A stretch of 64,000 nucleotides of DNA from positions 19,096,001 to 19,160,000 of the forward strand of contig NC_043021.1 of assembly GCF_006345805.1 (NCBI RefSeq), given 5' to 3'. Below, piece by piece: positions 7,596-54,486 of the stretch (position 1 is the stretch's first letter; every line of letters begins with the position of its first letter). The DNA comes from Octopus sinensis. Its lineage: Eukaryota. The notes beneath the pieces are model-generated. The model was not told the origin of the DNA and made no database searches. It saw nothing but the letters and a program-made list of their open reading frames with translations. A program made the position numbers and the translations under genes.

Positions 7596-8363
7596 ATGTT
7601 GCCTGACTACCAAGCCCTGTCGTGGGTCGTCCTTTGCCCAATAGCCATAGTGACAAATTGCTTTGGTGCCATTATCATTAGTCATTATAGAAGCTCCTAC
7701 ATCGGAACAGATTTGGTTCTAATTACACTCCTGTTGGCAATGGCAGCCAACGCTGGTATCTTGCTCCTGGTCCCTGCCGTTTATGTCATGCTAAACATGA
7801 CTTGGAGTACAGGGCTGTGCTTCTTTTACATTTGGATTTTCGGCTTCCTTCGTGCGGTCGGTCTCATCGGACTGTTTGTCCTCAGCTTCCACTGGTCCCA
7901 TGTTTCAAAACTAACACCTTTGAATCGCATACAGATGCCCAGCTTTCCAATCAAGAGCTCTCTTCTGGTCACAGTGCTCATTTCCATAATAGTCGGCATC
8001 TTACCATTGGTTCGCATACTGATGCGGCCCGACCCCTTTGATATAAACCTTCCCTGTATGTTCCTCACCTATGATGCCGATCCAGCTCTGGCCATTTTCA
8101 TCATCATTTTGACTCTGGTGGTTTTCTTTGCAATTATCATCTGCCTCATTGACTCCGGTCTTCTCCTGCACAGCTACAAGTCCATGTTCCTACTCAAATA
8201 TAAATCCGGCGGCTTCTACGACACTGAACGAGCTCGTGCCACGTGGAGCCGAACTGGCATCATCAGTGACACGTATTCGGAGATCAACAACACTTTCGAT
8301 TTATGGAGGGTTGTACTACTTCAGTTTCTTCTGTCCACTTTAATCAACCACATTCCATATTTG
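7596..8363 (+). CDS. Coding exon 1 of orphan class-A GPCR (GPR153/GPR162-like), TM1-TM6
   Basis: AAAATG start, 256 open codons with six hydrophobic segments (SWVVLCPIAIVTNCFG; DLVLITLLLAMAAN; W-S-T-G-L-C before TM3; LSFHW at the DRY position; IVGILPLV; CMFL before TM5; NHIPYL). Ends at a consensus donor TTG|GTAAGT, phase 0. The family call is from recalled similarity to GPR153/162 motifs (EWNEGLCK, SLSYHR, GFPVL), not from a search. Confidence 0.9.
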
Positions 8364-8504
8364 GTAAGTTTATTTCTTGTTTTAATTTGTGTGTGTGTGT
8401 GTGCGTGCACGTGCGCATGTGTGTGTGTGTGTAATAATCATCGCTTTTTTCATGCAGGCATACGTACATACATACATACGTAAAAATTAAACATACATAT
8501 TCTT

Positions 8505-9260
8505 TTATTCTTTTATTTGTTTCAGTCATTTGACTGTGCCCATTCTGGAGCACCACTTTGAAGGATTGCTTTTAGTCAAACAAATCAACCCTAAGACTTA
8601 TTTCTTTAGGCCTAGTACTTGTTCTGTTGGTGTCTTTGACCAAACTGCCAAGCTACAGGGATGCAAACCCACCAACACTGGTTGTCAAGTAGTCGTGGGG
8701 TCACAAACAGATACAAAGACAAATGCACACAGATGTATATGTGTATATATATATATATATATATATATATATATATATATAAATTTAGCAATTAAGGACA
8801 ACTACTTAATAAGGAAAACTTAACAAGAAATTGTCAGGTAGATAGCGTAAAAACCTCATAAGAGAAAAAATTTCGAAAATAATTATTTCTTATTGAACAT
8901 TTAATTTATATATAGAGGGCATTATACATACATGCCAGAAGGCATTATACATACATGCCAAACGCTAAGAGGGACAATTAGTCATTTCTACCAAAAATAT
9001 TACTAATCCCACCGAATGCAATTTTTCAAAGTAAGACATTTAAAAATATAGACCTGTATCACAGTATTTCATACTTACGTATCATCAGCAGGCCTGAATG
9101 TATATATATATATATAGACAGGCTTCTTCAGTTTCCATCTACTAAATCCACTTACCCGAAGCTACTGTAGAAGACACTTGCCCAAGGTGCCATGCAGGGG
9201 GACTGAACCTGGAACCATGTGGTTGAGAAGCAAGCTTCTTACCGCACAGCCTTTCTCATG
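8505..9260 (-). mobile_element. SINE-A split by a PLE-type insert in its central (TA)n
   Basis: Tail half 8505-8720 and head half 9115-9260 share orientation; 8782-9100 intervenes between TA runs. Confidence 0.75.
9051..9094 (-). ncRNA. Minimal type-I hammerhead ribozyme
   Basis: Minus strand GGCCTG-CTGATGA-TAC GTAA GTA-T-GAAA-TACTGTGA-TA-CAGGTC: 6-bp stem I, canonical core, GNRA-capped stem II, imperfect stem III. Confidence 0.65.
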
Positions 9261-9285
9261 CCTACTATACAAACATACATACATG

Positions 9286-50794: not shown

Positions 50795-51315
50795 TTCCTC
50801 CTCCTCCTCCTCCTCCTCCTCCTCCTCCTCTTCTTCTTCTTCTTCTTCTTCTTCTTCTTCTTCTTTATCTTCTTCTTCTTCTTCTTCTTCTTCTTCTTCT
50901 TCTTCTTCTTCTTCTCCTTCTCCTCCTCCTCCTCCTCCTCCTCCTCCTCCTCCTCCTCCTATATTAAATATGCTAACACTAACTTAACTATTGTTTATTC
51001 CTCCTCCTCCTCATCATCACCACTACTACTACTACTACTACTACTACTATTGACATCACACAGTATCCAATATTGTGAGGTTGTTGATTGAAGATATTGT
51101 GTCTACCAGGGGTTTGTATTGTTTGTCAAGTCACAACAAGAACCTCAGACAGACAGTACTTTACACCTGATGATGATGATAATGATAATAATAATAATAA
51201 TTATCATCATCATCATCATCATCATCATCATCATTATCATTATTATTATATTATTATTATTATTATTATTATTATTATTGCTGCTGTCTAATTATTATTA
51301 TTATCATTATCATTA
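50795..51315. repeat. (CCT)/(CTT)/(ACT)/(CAT)/(ATT) triplet tracts in intron 2
   Basis: Direct reading. Confidence 0.9.
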
Positions 51316-51334
51316 TCTTTTTTTTTCTCTGCAG

Positions 51335-54300
51335 AATCAACCTGCAAGTTGCAATCATATCGCCTAAAAGCCCACATCCAGGAGCAAAATTTAAAATTAC
51401 AAGAGAATCTAGCATCAAAGAAAGACCAATCTCATCCAGGCAAACCACAAAACAAGATTGGGTCAGCAGTGCCAACAGAGAAAGAGGGTGCTCTGTCCTC
51501 AGATCAAGACACCAAAACCCGCGTGCAAGCCGATGTGCACATCTACTCAACAACCCCTACTCGGCATCTGCTCAGTGTTTCAACCCCACGTCGGAAACAG
51601 TCCCTGGCAAACATAAATTTAAACCTGGAACGTACTGCGTCATCGTCTCTGTTGCCTGTCATCGCTGAGAAACAGCGGCAGAGAGCAGCCTCAATCTCAT
51701 CTCCTGTTGAATCCCCAAAAGAAAAGCATCAAAGCCCTTCTTCAGCTTCTGTCTCTGTTGTTGTTCATGATAATAATACTAAGTATTACAACACGAACAA
51801 TAATAATGTCCACGGTGCCGTGAAATCTGCAGAGAGTGAATTGAACAGTTCAAAACCTTCGTCGCCCGTCAATTCAGAATCAAGCAGTGCTCAGACATCG
51901 GAATTGTTCGATGAAGATGACATTGCAGAGGTCCTTGATCGATCACCCTCACCACCACCACATCCACTGTCCCCACCTCCACCGACGCCACCGAAAGGAT
52001 ATGAAAACGCAATTAGCAGAGCACCAATTGCTATTACTGTAACCGCCTCTGAGAGTGACGAAGCAAATGCAGTAACGAGCAGTAGCAATGATAAAAATTA
52101 TCGAGGTGACGATAAAAATGTCCCAGTACCACCAACAGCGACTTCCTCGGGGGCACAGCCCAAACATCAATCAACCACGACACAGGGTGAGATATGGACA
52201 TCAAAATCTCAATGTCTTCCCACTGCCCCATCTGGTGTGAGTTTTGATTTCCATGGGCCAAAACCTTATTTCGAACCCATTTCGGAAAACTCTAGCATCA
52301 TCAGCGAGGATGCACATTCAAAAGGTCTCCAGTCAACAACTTTATACAAAACAAAACCCTCCTACATGCGTTCCGAATCCTTCCTTCAAGCAGTGTCTTC
52401 CAGTTCTGCTTACGGAAGCACCACAAAGCCAGTCAGCAAGTTCAAATTGCTATCCAAAGCATTAATGTCTTTCAGCTGGTTAAAGAACAAGACGGTGCAG
52501 CCTAATTCCTCTTCTTCTCATCATTTCGAATCTGCAGACGATTCCCCAAAGACGTCGATGTTTCCCATGTTTAGTCGCAAGAAGAATTCAGAAGAAAACC
52601 CAGAAGAAGACCAGTCCAGATATACACTAACGACACAACCAATATCTCAGTCTCGGCGTAAGAGTGTCGCATTTAAACCGGACGATAACCTGATGTCTGA
52701 GAAGGCTGACGATGATTCGGAGGGAAAATCTAAGGAAGGGAATGACACGGCAACGATTTCAGAATCGGTCACGCTCTCTTCGACAAGCTCAGTTATTTCG
52801 TTACTTGGTCAGAACAAGTCCGACGAGAATGATCATAACACACTGACAGGAATTGCAAACTTGGGGGCGGATTTCACCGATGAATCTTCTGTAAAACCTC
52901 CAAAAGATAATCAGAAAATCGACGGAAACGATAGGGAGAAATCGGTTGACATCAAGAGAAAGAATGAAAATTACGCTGACCACCACATTGAAGAAAGGCA
53001 AACAGAGAACAGCACTCCCCTCTATCAGTCAGAAAATACAAACAAACCACAGCGTGAAAATACACCAGTCGCTTTACGGAAACTTCCGCTTCCACCATCA
53101 CATTTGTCTAAGATTGCAGCCGCTACCGACAAAAAGAAGGGCCCTTCTCAAAACCCATTGACCTCCCAACCTCTCGCTGTATTAGCTAAAAGCAAATCGC
53201 CGCCTTTCCCTCCACCACCACCGCCGCCACAAGCAGCCCCACCGCCACCGCCGCCACCGCCACCACCACCACCACCACCAGCGCCTCCACTGCCTTCATC
53301 CACTGCAAAGACAAATCGAGCAAGTCCTTCCACAAATTGCCTTAAAAATGCCAACAGTGAGACACCTAATAAGAATTCTCAGTCAAAACCATCTCCTGAA
53401 GCTCAGACTCAGAAGCGCCCGTCCCTCATCACGACGGAACTATTGGCCTCTCACGATATCATAAAACGTTTACGCAACCAAGCAGAAAAGCACATGGCGG
53501 AGTCATCTGCAGAGAACGCGGACCTGAGTGACCAGATCAGCATCGATACTACAAGTGGAACCTACCTTCAAAGCGATGAAGACAAATCTGTCTCCGAATG
53601 TGTCCAGGACTCTTTGTTGTTGTCCAGTTTTAATCGAATGTATCGCAGTGTTTCAGACGAATCCATTTTCTCACACATTGGTAGTGAAACCAAAGAGATG
53701 CCACCTAGTCTCTCTAAAGCTACGGATGACCTAACCATGGCTGGTTTTTCTGATATAAACCGAAGTCTCTTTTGGCCGAATCTGAAAAATGCTCGGCAAG
53801 GTACTCGATCGGCAAACGACCTTCATTTGATTGCTTATGTTCCGCCAATAGCATCGCGAACCATTCCAGTACAGAAAGTTAAGGCTCTCCAAGCGACATC
53901 TCCAGATAGAAATGTCAACAAACCTGAATCTCCAAAGTATGAAACAGGTAAAAAACTCGAAGAAAACGATGAAAAGGACGAAGATGATCTCAGCGATTCG
54001 TCATCAACAGATTCTTTGAAATGTCTGAAAATTCTTAAGAAAATCGAACAGGAATCTGATAGAGAAAAAGTAGAGCGGTTACGACAAGAACTCATGGACG
54101 TTGACACGCTTCGAACATCCCCGCTTTTTATACGGAAATTGGAGAAAGAACTGTTAGCAAGGAAAAGGTCGGCCGAGAAAGTCGAAAAGCCTATAATGGC
54201 AAGCGTTCGGACTGTGGAAGGTCCAGAGAAGGTTTTACCACCAAAATCCCTGTTTAACATTGATGACGGTTCACCAAGGTCTCTGAGGAGATTCCTTGCT

Positions 54301-54486
54301 GAAGTTATAGCAGAGAGGCAGGATGTTGCCAAATCTGCTATTGCATCCTCACCTTCATCACCATTTGCAACGGCGCCTCAGTCACCATCTTACACATCGT
54401 CACCAGCAAGAACAGACAGCACGATTAATTCTGGCCAGACTGGCCACAGTATAAATGCCATTATTGATGTGAAGACAATTGTTTGA
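51335..54486 (+). CDS. Coding exon 3: ~1050-aa Ser/Pro/Lys/Glu-rich cytoplasmic tail, stop TGA
   Basis: Acceptor ttttttttctctgcag|AA, phase 1 (G+AA = Glu). 3152-nt uninterrupted frame in non-repetitive sequence (track ORF 51349-54486, 1045 aa). Total CDS 768+190+3152 = 4110 nt, divisible by 3. Confidence 0.88.

Follow-up and report, generated by a model that had tools for sequence, protein, structure and literature searches.

A divergent long-tailed octopus receptor of a lophotrochozoan family related to the vertebrate orphans GPR153 and GPR162

Introduction

GPR153 and GPR162 are both still orphan receptors. A single, preliminary pairing with CART(55-102) is on record for GPR162 (PMC13494238), and mammalian GPR153 lowers cyclic AMP in a manner that is insensitive to pertussis toxin, dependent on Gs and apparently non-canonical, with no canonical Gi/o coupling (PMC12234975). 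Our literature searches for invertebrate GPR153/162 found no relevant paper, and, in the paper library searched, none that pairs GPR153 with 'bilaterian' or with both 'evolution' and 'invertebrate'. Here we analyze a stretch of 64,000 nucleotides (nt) of the Octopus sinensis genome (assembly GCF_006345805.1, contig NC_043021.1, positions 19,096,001 to 19,160,000, forward strand), referred to below as the window, to which all positions refer. A preliminary description made from the letters of this stretch had placed in it a gene for a GPR153/162-like receptor with an exceptionally long cytoplasmic tail, and that gene is the subject of this study.

The closest described proteins, vertebrate GPR153 (609 residues) and GPR162 (588 residues), resemble the octopus receptor in having His at position 3.49, Phe at 3.32 where aminergic receptors have Asp, an RYR sequence in helix 8, no Asp2.50 and no Trp6.48, and they share further signatures with its relatives. 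They differ in retaining Arg3.50, within an HRM triplet, and in their much shorter tails (303 residues in human GPR153 and 255 in GPR162), in which no similarity to the octopod one was detected. The nearest solved structures are those of aminergic receptors, namely 5-HT2A/2C and the beta-adrenoceptors (profile E ~1e-17, TM-score ~0.7), from which the octopod receptor is set apart by the lack of Asp3.32, of DRY and of NPxxY, and by a much longer C-tail. Conservation indicates that the window holds one three-exon octopod protein-coding gene, and family profiles support its assignment to a GPR153/162-like family; we regard the gene model and this assignment, taken jointly, as highly probable.

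Results

Exon structure of the octopus gene

The coding sequence runs on the + strand, as do all receptor features described below. Coding exon 1 (7596-8363, 768 nt, residues 1-256) starts at an ATG, upstream of which lie in-frame stops, and encodes a very short N-terminus followed by transmembrane helices TM1 to TM6 as far as the sequence NHIPYL, where it ends at the donor TTG/gtaagt. Intron 1 (8364-49027, phase 0, 40,664 nt) is occupied by microsatellites, repeats resembling short interspersed nuclear elements (SINEs) and one copy of the U5 small nuclear RNA (snRNA) gene. The acceptor ttgcag/ opens coding exon 2 (49028-49217, 190 nt, residues 257-320), which supplies the extracellular end of TM6, the third extracellular loop (ECL3), TM7 and helix 8, and whose donor AAG/gtaaaa leads into intron 2 (49218-51334, phase 1, 2,117 nt). 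Coding exon 3 (51335-54486, 3152 nt, residues 320-1369 and the TGA stop) follows the acceptor ctgcag/ and encodes a cytoplasmic tail rich in Ser, Pro and Lys; its open reading frame (ORF) has no ATG near the 5' end, the first listed start being a TTG. The phases of the three exons are compatible, and their join of 4110 nt gives 1369 codons with zero internal stops. Once microsatellite and low-complexity translations are excluded, the window has no long ORFs other than those of exon 1 and exon 3. The preliminary description had proposed these exons, with TM7 on the 190-nt exon 40.7 kilobases (kb) downstream, in a product of 1369 residues of which about 78% is tail; the splice sites, the exon cuts of a second octopod and the structural model presented below agree with it on each count.

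Conservation of the gene in Argonauta hians

The second octopod gene was reached by word-indexed homologue searches, in which the candidate lists were swamped by low-complexity and hydrophobic words and which yielded three sequences only (P0001, P0002 and P0003). With the full-length product as query, the match was P0001, the Argonauta hians 'hypothetical protein Ahia01_001074800' of 1441 residues, which we mapped back onto its locus (L001; GCA_054771915.1, contig BAAFZT010000066.1). The Argonauta gene consists of coding exons of 768, 190 and 3368 nt, which are split at the codons and in the phases seen in the octopus window. P0001 is the orthologue and also shares the tail islands, the polyproline run, a -KTVV end and an upstream U5 snRNA gene; it differs in its shorter introns (25,233 and 995 nt) and in about 70 extra residues in variable stretches of the tail.

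Comparison of the window with the Argonauta locus by blastn gave colinear unique matches at 7593-8369, at 49022-49219 and in four blocks within 51332-54387, and the other matches comprised only the shared upstream U5 snRNA and dispersed repeats. Each predicted exon boundary lies within 6 nt of the point at which nucleotide conservation of the two species ends. The same comparison found no further conserved coding block in intron 1; colinear conservation does not extend beyond the three exons, and these 40.7 kb thus hide no additional conserved exon.

At the protein level, exon 1 is 89% identical to the Argonauta exon 1 of equal length, and identity amounts to 88% over the seven-transmembrane (7TM) region and 66% overall. 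The nonsynonymous divergence (dN) is 0.07 for exon 1, 0.09 for exon 2, 0.11 for residues 1061-1300 and 0.33-0.45 for the variable tail. The synonymous divergence (dS) is saturated and dN/dS not calculable, for which reason dN alone is reported; low dN beside saturated dS indicates that the whole ORF is under purifying selection. Beyond the octopods, the BLASTP alignment to the Gigantopelta orthologue runs unbroken over residues 6-328 and spans both junctions (33% identity, E=9e-48).

The two remaining database sequences, P0002 and P0003, are ORFs of exon 1 only and represent genomic read-throughs into the intron on contigs of 1-1.5 kb. P0003 (L002, 160-1011 of a 1011-nt contig of Logan SRR29271480) represents another cephalopod-like exon 1, a more distant one at 61% identity, whose ECL2 contains about 18 inserted residues. 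Its contig was considered as transcript evidence for the junction of exons 1 and 2 and was rejected, as only 9 codons follow the boundary before the ORF runs out at the very end of the contig.

Fold of the receptor core

The core is that of a very divergent receptor with a class A (rhodopsin-type) 7TM fold. An alignment of 21 sequences of the 7TM region (A2) was used for the profile, for AlphaFold (AF2) modelling and for hhalign. With these 21 sequences AF2 returned seven TM helices and helix 8 at a predicted local distance difference test score (pLDDT) of 83.8 and a predicted TM-score (pTM) of 0.83, against a pLDDT of 40 only with 4 sequences. In this model TM1 spans residues 4-29 (7605-7682), TM2 residues 37-65 (7704-7790), TM3 residues 72-103 (7809-7904), TM4 residues 117-143 (7944-8024), TM5 residues 163-203 (8082-8204) and TM6 residues 222-264 (from 8259 into exon 2), with the TM6 helix uninterrupted across the exon 1/2 junction. 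TM7 (residues 270-294, 49067-49141) and helix 8 (residues 296-311, with RYRHA at 49148-49162) fall on exon 2, where residues 271-300 reach pLDDT values of 92-95. Foldseek matched the model best to the beta1-adrenoceptor and 5-HT2C (TM-score 0.68-0.76), and the A2 profile matches 5-HT2A (E=5.7e-18, 68.3 bits) as well as other aminergic receptors. Four residues are invariant in the 21-sequence alignment: W70, the ECL1 Trp; C75 and C154, the cysteine pair between TM3 and ECL2; and P254, which is Pro6.50. Pfam 7tm_1 recognizes 10 of the 21 members of A2, and the octopod sequence is not among them.

Membership in a lophotrochozoan receptor family

An exhaustive HMMER search of 1.84 billion proteins with a four-sequence cephalopod profile retrieved 35 relatives; the source names of 20 were looked up and names were found on 13. 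The gastropods and bivalves among them are Haliotis (986 residues), Gigantopelta (1096), Saccostrea (940), Physella (1387), Mizuhopecten (1025), Patella (820), Bulinus (1371), Pinctada (530), Dreissena (1063), Elysia (1915) and Potamilus (927), and the two non-molluscs are the annelid Owenia (945) and the nemertean Tubulanus (693). Identity in the 7TM region is about 30% for Gigantopelta XP_041377681.1, Haliotis XP_067659526.1, Physella XP_059175643.1, Mizuhopecten A0A210PX88, Owenia CAH1774985.1 and Tubulanus XP_074654726.1, which all belong to the same 7TM family, and the Mizuhopecten (scallop) entry bears the UniProt name 'G-protein coupled receptor 153'. Many relatives are genomic ORFs of about 260 residues that end in NH[IL]P[YF]x followed by VS, and since 'VS' is what a GTnAGn donor gives on read-through, the phase-0 position of intron 1 is implied in them as well. 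The gastropod, bivalve, annelid and nemertean relatives are alike in their very short N-terminus and in the implied intron after NH[IL]P[YF]x, and their long tails open with CxLQSY and DDDIxxILD. The octopod protein has what characterizes this long-tailed lophotrochozoan clade, namely an orthologous 7TM region, an intron of phase 0 following NH[IL]P[YF]x, CxLQSY after helix 8 and a tail of more than 500 residues.

For the comparison with vertebrates, the human sequences were confirmed by exact-sequence look-up (NP_997253.2/GP153_HUMAN and NP_062832.1/GP162_HUMAN). Over the whole 7TM region, hhalign aligned A2 with GPR153 at a probability of 99.4% (E=1.4e-21) and with GPR162 at 99.3% (E=3.5e-20). 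The informative measure is the bit-score margin, since any class A receptor matches to some degree. In hmmsearch, the A2 profile gave GPR153 135.3 bits and GPR162 127.9 bits, and the best solved GPCR (G-protein-coupled receptor) in the PDB 68.3 bits; the generic Pfam 7tm_1 profile gave GPR153 63.9 bits, about half its A2 score. In the reverse direction, with GPR153 as query, six family members scored between 68.4 and 50.1 bits (Gigantopelta 68.4, Physella 59.9, Owenia 50.1), and the best solved GPCR, 5-HT1E, reached 34.5 bits over TM1-4 only.

The human receptors and the family also have unusual signatures in common: WxE(S/G)LC in ECL1, C-x-F-[IL]-x4-[IL]G-x-GF from ECL2 into TM5, LPxxLW in the place of NPxxY in TM7, RYR in helix 8, Phe at 3.32 and, in human and most molluscan members, His3.49. 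Most of these family-specific substitutions are present in the annelid and in the molluscs other than octopods. Of them the octopod protein shows His3.49 and RYR, whereas its TM7 reads FPFTLL where other molluscs have LPHxLW, and GxGF is missing; it is the most derived sequence of the family. The GPR153/162 likeness put forward earlier is therefore supported at the family level, through the family profile and the reverse search, and the comparisons identify the vertebrate orphans GPR153 and GPR162 as the nearest characterized relatives of the lophotrochozoan family.

Loss of the activation microswitches

Arg3.50 is the most conserved residue of class A receptors and contacts the C-terminus of G-alpha; together with Tyr7.53, it is central to the engagement of G proteins. 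In the profile alignments, position 2.50 of the octopod receptor is Met (M49) and the usual Asp is absent. At the end of TM3, the sequence LSFHWSH (7881-7901) sets H-W-S in the D/E-R-Y position 3.49-3.51, with Trp replacing Arg3.50. Positions 6.47-6.50 read N-H-I-P, with His at 6.48 in the place of W6.48. In TM7, FPFTLL (49118-49138) replaces NPxxY, and 7.49-7.53 are F-P-F-T-L, with N7.49 and Y7.53 both absent. The absence of DRY and NPxxY that had been read from LSFHWSH and LFPFTLL is thereby borne out, and the class A microswitches D2.50, D/E-R-Y, CWxP and NPxxY are nearly all lost, which makes the receptor atypical and leaves its membership in the fold unaffected.

The distribution of the residues at 3.49-3.50 separates the molluscs from their relatives. 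All named molluscs have HW, YW, LW or NW, with Trp3.50 in 13 of 13, whereas Owenia and four further relatives have DR, a fifth relative ER, Tubulanus DC, and human GPR153 and GPR162 HR; over 3.49-3.51, the annelid DRV and the human HRM stand against the octopus HWS in the profile alignment. The change of Arg3.50 to Trp is, as these alignments indicate, a phylum-wide molluscan trait, superimposed on a family already lacking D2.50, W6.48 and NPxxY.

The cytoplasmic tail

The tail occupies residues 301-1369, about 1,070 residues or 78% of the protein. It contains 15% Ser, 9.5% Pro and 8% Lys, 69% of its residues are disorder-promoting, and by composition the octopod tail looks disordered. It also holds many Ser/Thr residues and basophilic kinase-type sites. 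No hydrophobic segment was found in it, and no Pfam domain in the octopod tail or in the tail of any orthologue. The preliminary description had stressed the length of this tail as out of the ordinary and had proposed a comparison that included bivalves. The length itself stands, but it is not special to this gene, as the tails of molluscan members measure 522-1591 residues and that of Owenia 640. A long tail common to molluscs and an annelid is therefore the norm of the lophotrochozoan family and not a peculiarity of octopus, and what the octopod tail shares with those of other molluscs is limited to short motifs.

The tails of gastropods, bivalves and the annelid can be aligned with one another (Gigantopelta-Haliotis E=8e-110, Owenia-Haliotis E=9e-13) and present an ordered series of motifs: CxLQSY, WKEQMRKKHLP, SSDYH, DDDIxxILD, RGFEEAL and FKTQAV, followed by an -[AV][YF]F end. 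Octopods retain three of the six in the same order, as CKLQSY at residue 323, EDDIAEVLD at 513 and FLQAV at 669. They have neither WKEQMRKKHLP, SSDYH nor RGFEEAL, nor the -[AV][YF]F end, and have instead a lineage-specific distal part; beyond the kept motifs, about 700 residues are without counterpart elsewhere. In their fuller form, the motifs of the gastropod, bivalve and Owenia sequences P0004-P0022 read WKEQMRKKHLP(A)IFVNEAFD, YYMSSDYHPDYL, DRGFEEAL and FKTQAVVS, to which the molluscs add -[AV][YF]F; the first two of these, WKEQMRKKHLP(A)IFVNEAFD and YYMSSDYHPDYL, occur in the annelid too. No Pfam family covers these motifs, which appear to constitute a conserved and so far undescribed module in the tails of this receptor family.

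The first retained motif, CKLQSY (51343-51360), is membrane-proximal and lies 3 codons into exon 3. In gastropods and bivalves the corresponding CxLQSY follows helix 8, and this alignment ties exon 3 to the 7TM exons. The acidic motif ELFDEDDIAEVLD (51901-51939) corresponds to [DE]xDIxxILD of other molluscs. A conserved island of residues 606-700 (52192-52476; blastn block 52185-52482) is 73-77% identical to Argonauta and includes FLQAV, the equivalent of the molluscan FKTQAV.

The remaining conserved elements belong to the octopod part of the tail. A pattern scan of the proline-rich region (53077-53289) picked out RKLPLPP, which fits a class I SH3-ligand-like pattern, and FPPPPPPPQAAPPPPPPPPPPPPPPAPP; both are kept in Argonauta, and a 28-residue polyproline tract beginning FPPPP is common to the two species. 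From these patterns, partners of SH3/EVH1 type are predicted. Residues 1064-1176 (53566-53904) form a near-invariant, octopod-specific island containing YRSVSDESIFSHIGSETKEMPPSL, in which the 30-residue blocks of 1081-1170 are 87-100% identical to Argonauta and which had no match in Pfam, the PDB or other mollusc tails. The charged segment of residues 1213-1277 (54013-54207), rich in K, E, R and L and 80-87% identical to Argonauta, probably forms a helix and may be a coiled coil. A search of the PDB with the C-terminal 306 residues gave nothing below E=0.25. The protein ends in AIIDVKTIV before the stop (54457-54486), with Thr at -2 and Val at 0 as in class I PDZ ligands, and Argonauta ends in -KTVV; the pattern predicts that the octopod C-terminus may bind PDZ domains.

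Two further motifs, RRxSxDE..IF and SLRxFL, had seemed by eye to be common to the octopod tail and the human GPR153/162 tails. They were rejected, as neither phmmer nor Smith-Waterman alignment against shuffled sequences supported them.

Sequence surrounding the coding exons

Two full-length U5 snRNA genes lie on the - strand of the window, at 3012-3136 and 41315-41439 (Rfam RF00020, 91.4 bits each); the first is 4.5 kb upstream of the receptor start codon and the second is within intron 1. Each belongs to one copy of a duplication of about 535 bp (2887-3423 and 41190-41722, 89% identity). The upstream copy looks syntenic, because a U5 gene is also found upstream of the Argonauta orthologue (L001 2491-2635, 90% identity). 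ARAGORN called no tRNA in the window.

A SINE-like repeat occurs on both strands, at approximately 5810-5977, 23556-23723, 25893-26057, 29338-29510, 47575-47749, 58245-58341 and 59022-59134, and as a tandem of two 392-bp units in intron 1 (37243-38033, 96% matches), with related copies in the Argonauta locus. Two short intronic ORFs, at 13797-14309 (+) and 49838-50101 (-), resemble by eye the C-terminal remnants of retrotransposon ORF2, for example GRGRPKKTWNEVV; this resemblance is unconfirmed, and a Pfam search of these two candidate tails of long interspersed nuclear elements (LINEs) gave no match. Downstream of the gene, a 30-nt minisatellite (57201-57716, +) translates into repeated GDPT[SG]AGATL decapeptides with a weak, sub-threshold Pfam match to 'Decapeptide repeat' (E=0.022) and is probably non-coding. 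At 59636-60749, simple sequence rich in (TG/CA)n extends over about 1.1 kb and gives rise to spurious ORFs of 190-300 residues on both strands.

Discussion

The octopus gene is an ordinary member of a little-studied receptor family, whose orthologues are already public as uncharacterized proteins. As for the way in which the protein may work, we tentatively propose, at somewhat short of an even chance, a scaffold-type, non-canonical form of signalling. The protein would not be a conventional ligand-driven activator of G proteins; its 7TM core would serve as an anchor, and perhaps as a gate, for a long flexible tail, and the tail would recruit partners through short linear motifs. Two of these, CxLQSY and the acidic DDDIxxVLD, are common to other molluscs, and to them the octopods add the proline runs of SH3/EVH1 type, the invariant island of 110 residues, the charged helical segment and the PDZ-like -KT[IV]V end; phosphorylation sites in the tail may recruit partners as well. 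Such a mechanism would parallel the non-canonical signalling of GPR153 in mammals. Together with the gene and the family, this inferred mechanism makes up the explanation that we consider, overall, to be likely the best.

Several points weigh against this explanation in one part or another. The splicing is read from conservation and from the gene model of another species. The octopod protein by itself matched nothing in Pfam, 7tm_1 included, or among PDB sequences, and the direct comparison of the octopus 7TM region with GPR153 is marginal (BLASTP E=0.001, TM1-3 only). The cephalopod-only profile missed vertebrate GPR153 and GPR162 among the 1.84 billion proteins, and the bit-score margins were measured against solved GPCRs, a set that is not the complete class A repertoire. 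With HMMER, a mollusc tail profile included, the octopod tail had no significant match to other mollusc tails beyond the short motifs; against the human GPR153/162 tails phmmer found nothing, and Smith-Waterman scores against shuffled sequences gave z<=2.6, which is compositional. Because disordered tails evolve fast, this dissimilarity of the tails is only a minor argument against an orthologous 7TM region. The scaffold idea itself is drawn from the missing microswitches and from motif patterns, and short patterns of the proline and PDZ types arise by chance in long disordered sequence.

The main rival to the scaffold reading, which we hold to be possible at distinctly lower than even chances, is a conventional ligand-activated class A receptor in which the long tail serves only regulation, that is phosphorylation, arrestin binding or trafficking. 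The complete class A fold, with its C75-C154 pair and helix 8, is what such a receptor would have, the abundant Ser/Thr and kinase-type sites of the tail would suit a regulatory role, and the preliminary peptide pairing reported for mammalian GPR162 (PMC13494238) also speaks for it. It has to contend with the replacement of Arg3.50 by Trp in every mollusc examined, with the absence of D2.50, W6.48, N7.49 and Y7.53, and with the finding that mammalian GPR153 shows no canonical Gi/o coupling (PMC12234975).

An improbable alternative concerns the family. The receptor might descend from an independent lophotrochozoan lineage of class A orphans, whose motifs shared with GPR153/162 would be due to convergence or would be features of the alpha group. 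The weak direct match between octopus and human, tails that cannot be aligned and the failure of the cephalopod profile to retrieve vertebrate proteins would all be expected in that case. But the margin over every solved GPCR is two-fold in bits and is seen in both directions, GPR153 scores 135 bits on the family profile against 63.9 on Pfam 7tm_1, and the shared LPxxLW and RYR are unusual, as is the His3.49 of human and most molluscan members; in addition, it was an independent annotation pipeline that named the scallop member GPR153.

Very improbable is the view that the window contains two separate genes, a truncated receptor of six or seven TM helices and an unrelated gene for a disordered protein encoded by the 3.15-kb ORF, with a coincidental match of phases. 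The exon-1-only ORFs in the databases and the unlikeness of the tail to those of vertebrate GPR153/162 could be cited in its favor, but those ORFs are read-throughs on short genomic contigs, in the Argonauta model the three exons are likewise joined, the exon 3 ORF is without an ATG near its 5' end, and CKLQSY aligns with the CxLQSY that directly follows helix 8 in single-chain proteins of ten other molluscs. That the gene is a decaying, non-functional copy is less credible still, since the lost activation motifs and the miss by Pfam 7tm_1 that might suggest it are set against a 1369-codon ORF intact over three exons, intact orthologues in Argonauta and many molluscs and a 7TM dN of 0.07 with saturated dS, and the motif losses, being common across the phylum, are ancient and tolerated.

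Returning to the scaffold reading, it may be extended to the protostome counterpart of GPR153/162 as a whole, which would then be a G-protein-independent 'anchor plus scaffold' protein; we offer this as a speculative and rather doubtful generalization. Arg3.50 would have been lost to Trp early in the molluscs, when D2.50, W6.48 and NPxxY were already missing, and signalling would have passed to the motif-bearing tail of 500-1,600 residues. The octopods would subsequently have swapped the distal half of the tail for a new module of about 700 residues, possibly for synaptic or cytoskeletal anchoring.

The locus also holds a lesson for annotation. Pfam 7tm_1 is blind to the octopod protein, and TM7 lies on a 190-nt exon 40 kb away from the helices before it. 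It had been anticipated that automated annotation could split the gene into two uncharacterized ones; the miss by 7tm_1, the 'hypothetical protein' label in Argonauta and the exon-1-only ORFs give substance to that concern, but the Argonauta model was not split.

Few human class A receptors are as poorly understood as GPR153 and GPR162, the former having neither a ligand nor an established coupling, and a clear relative of the pair is now shown in molluscs, an annelid and a nemertean. The comparative series of DR, HR and HW at positions 3.49-3.50, together with the ordered tail motifs, offers a way to ask whether this family signals through G proteins. If the 'anchor plus scaffold' proposal is true, the invertebrate proteins could reveal the non-canonical mechanism of mammalian GPR153 and GPR162.

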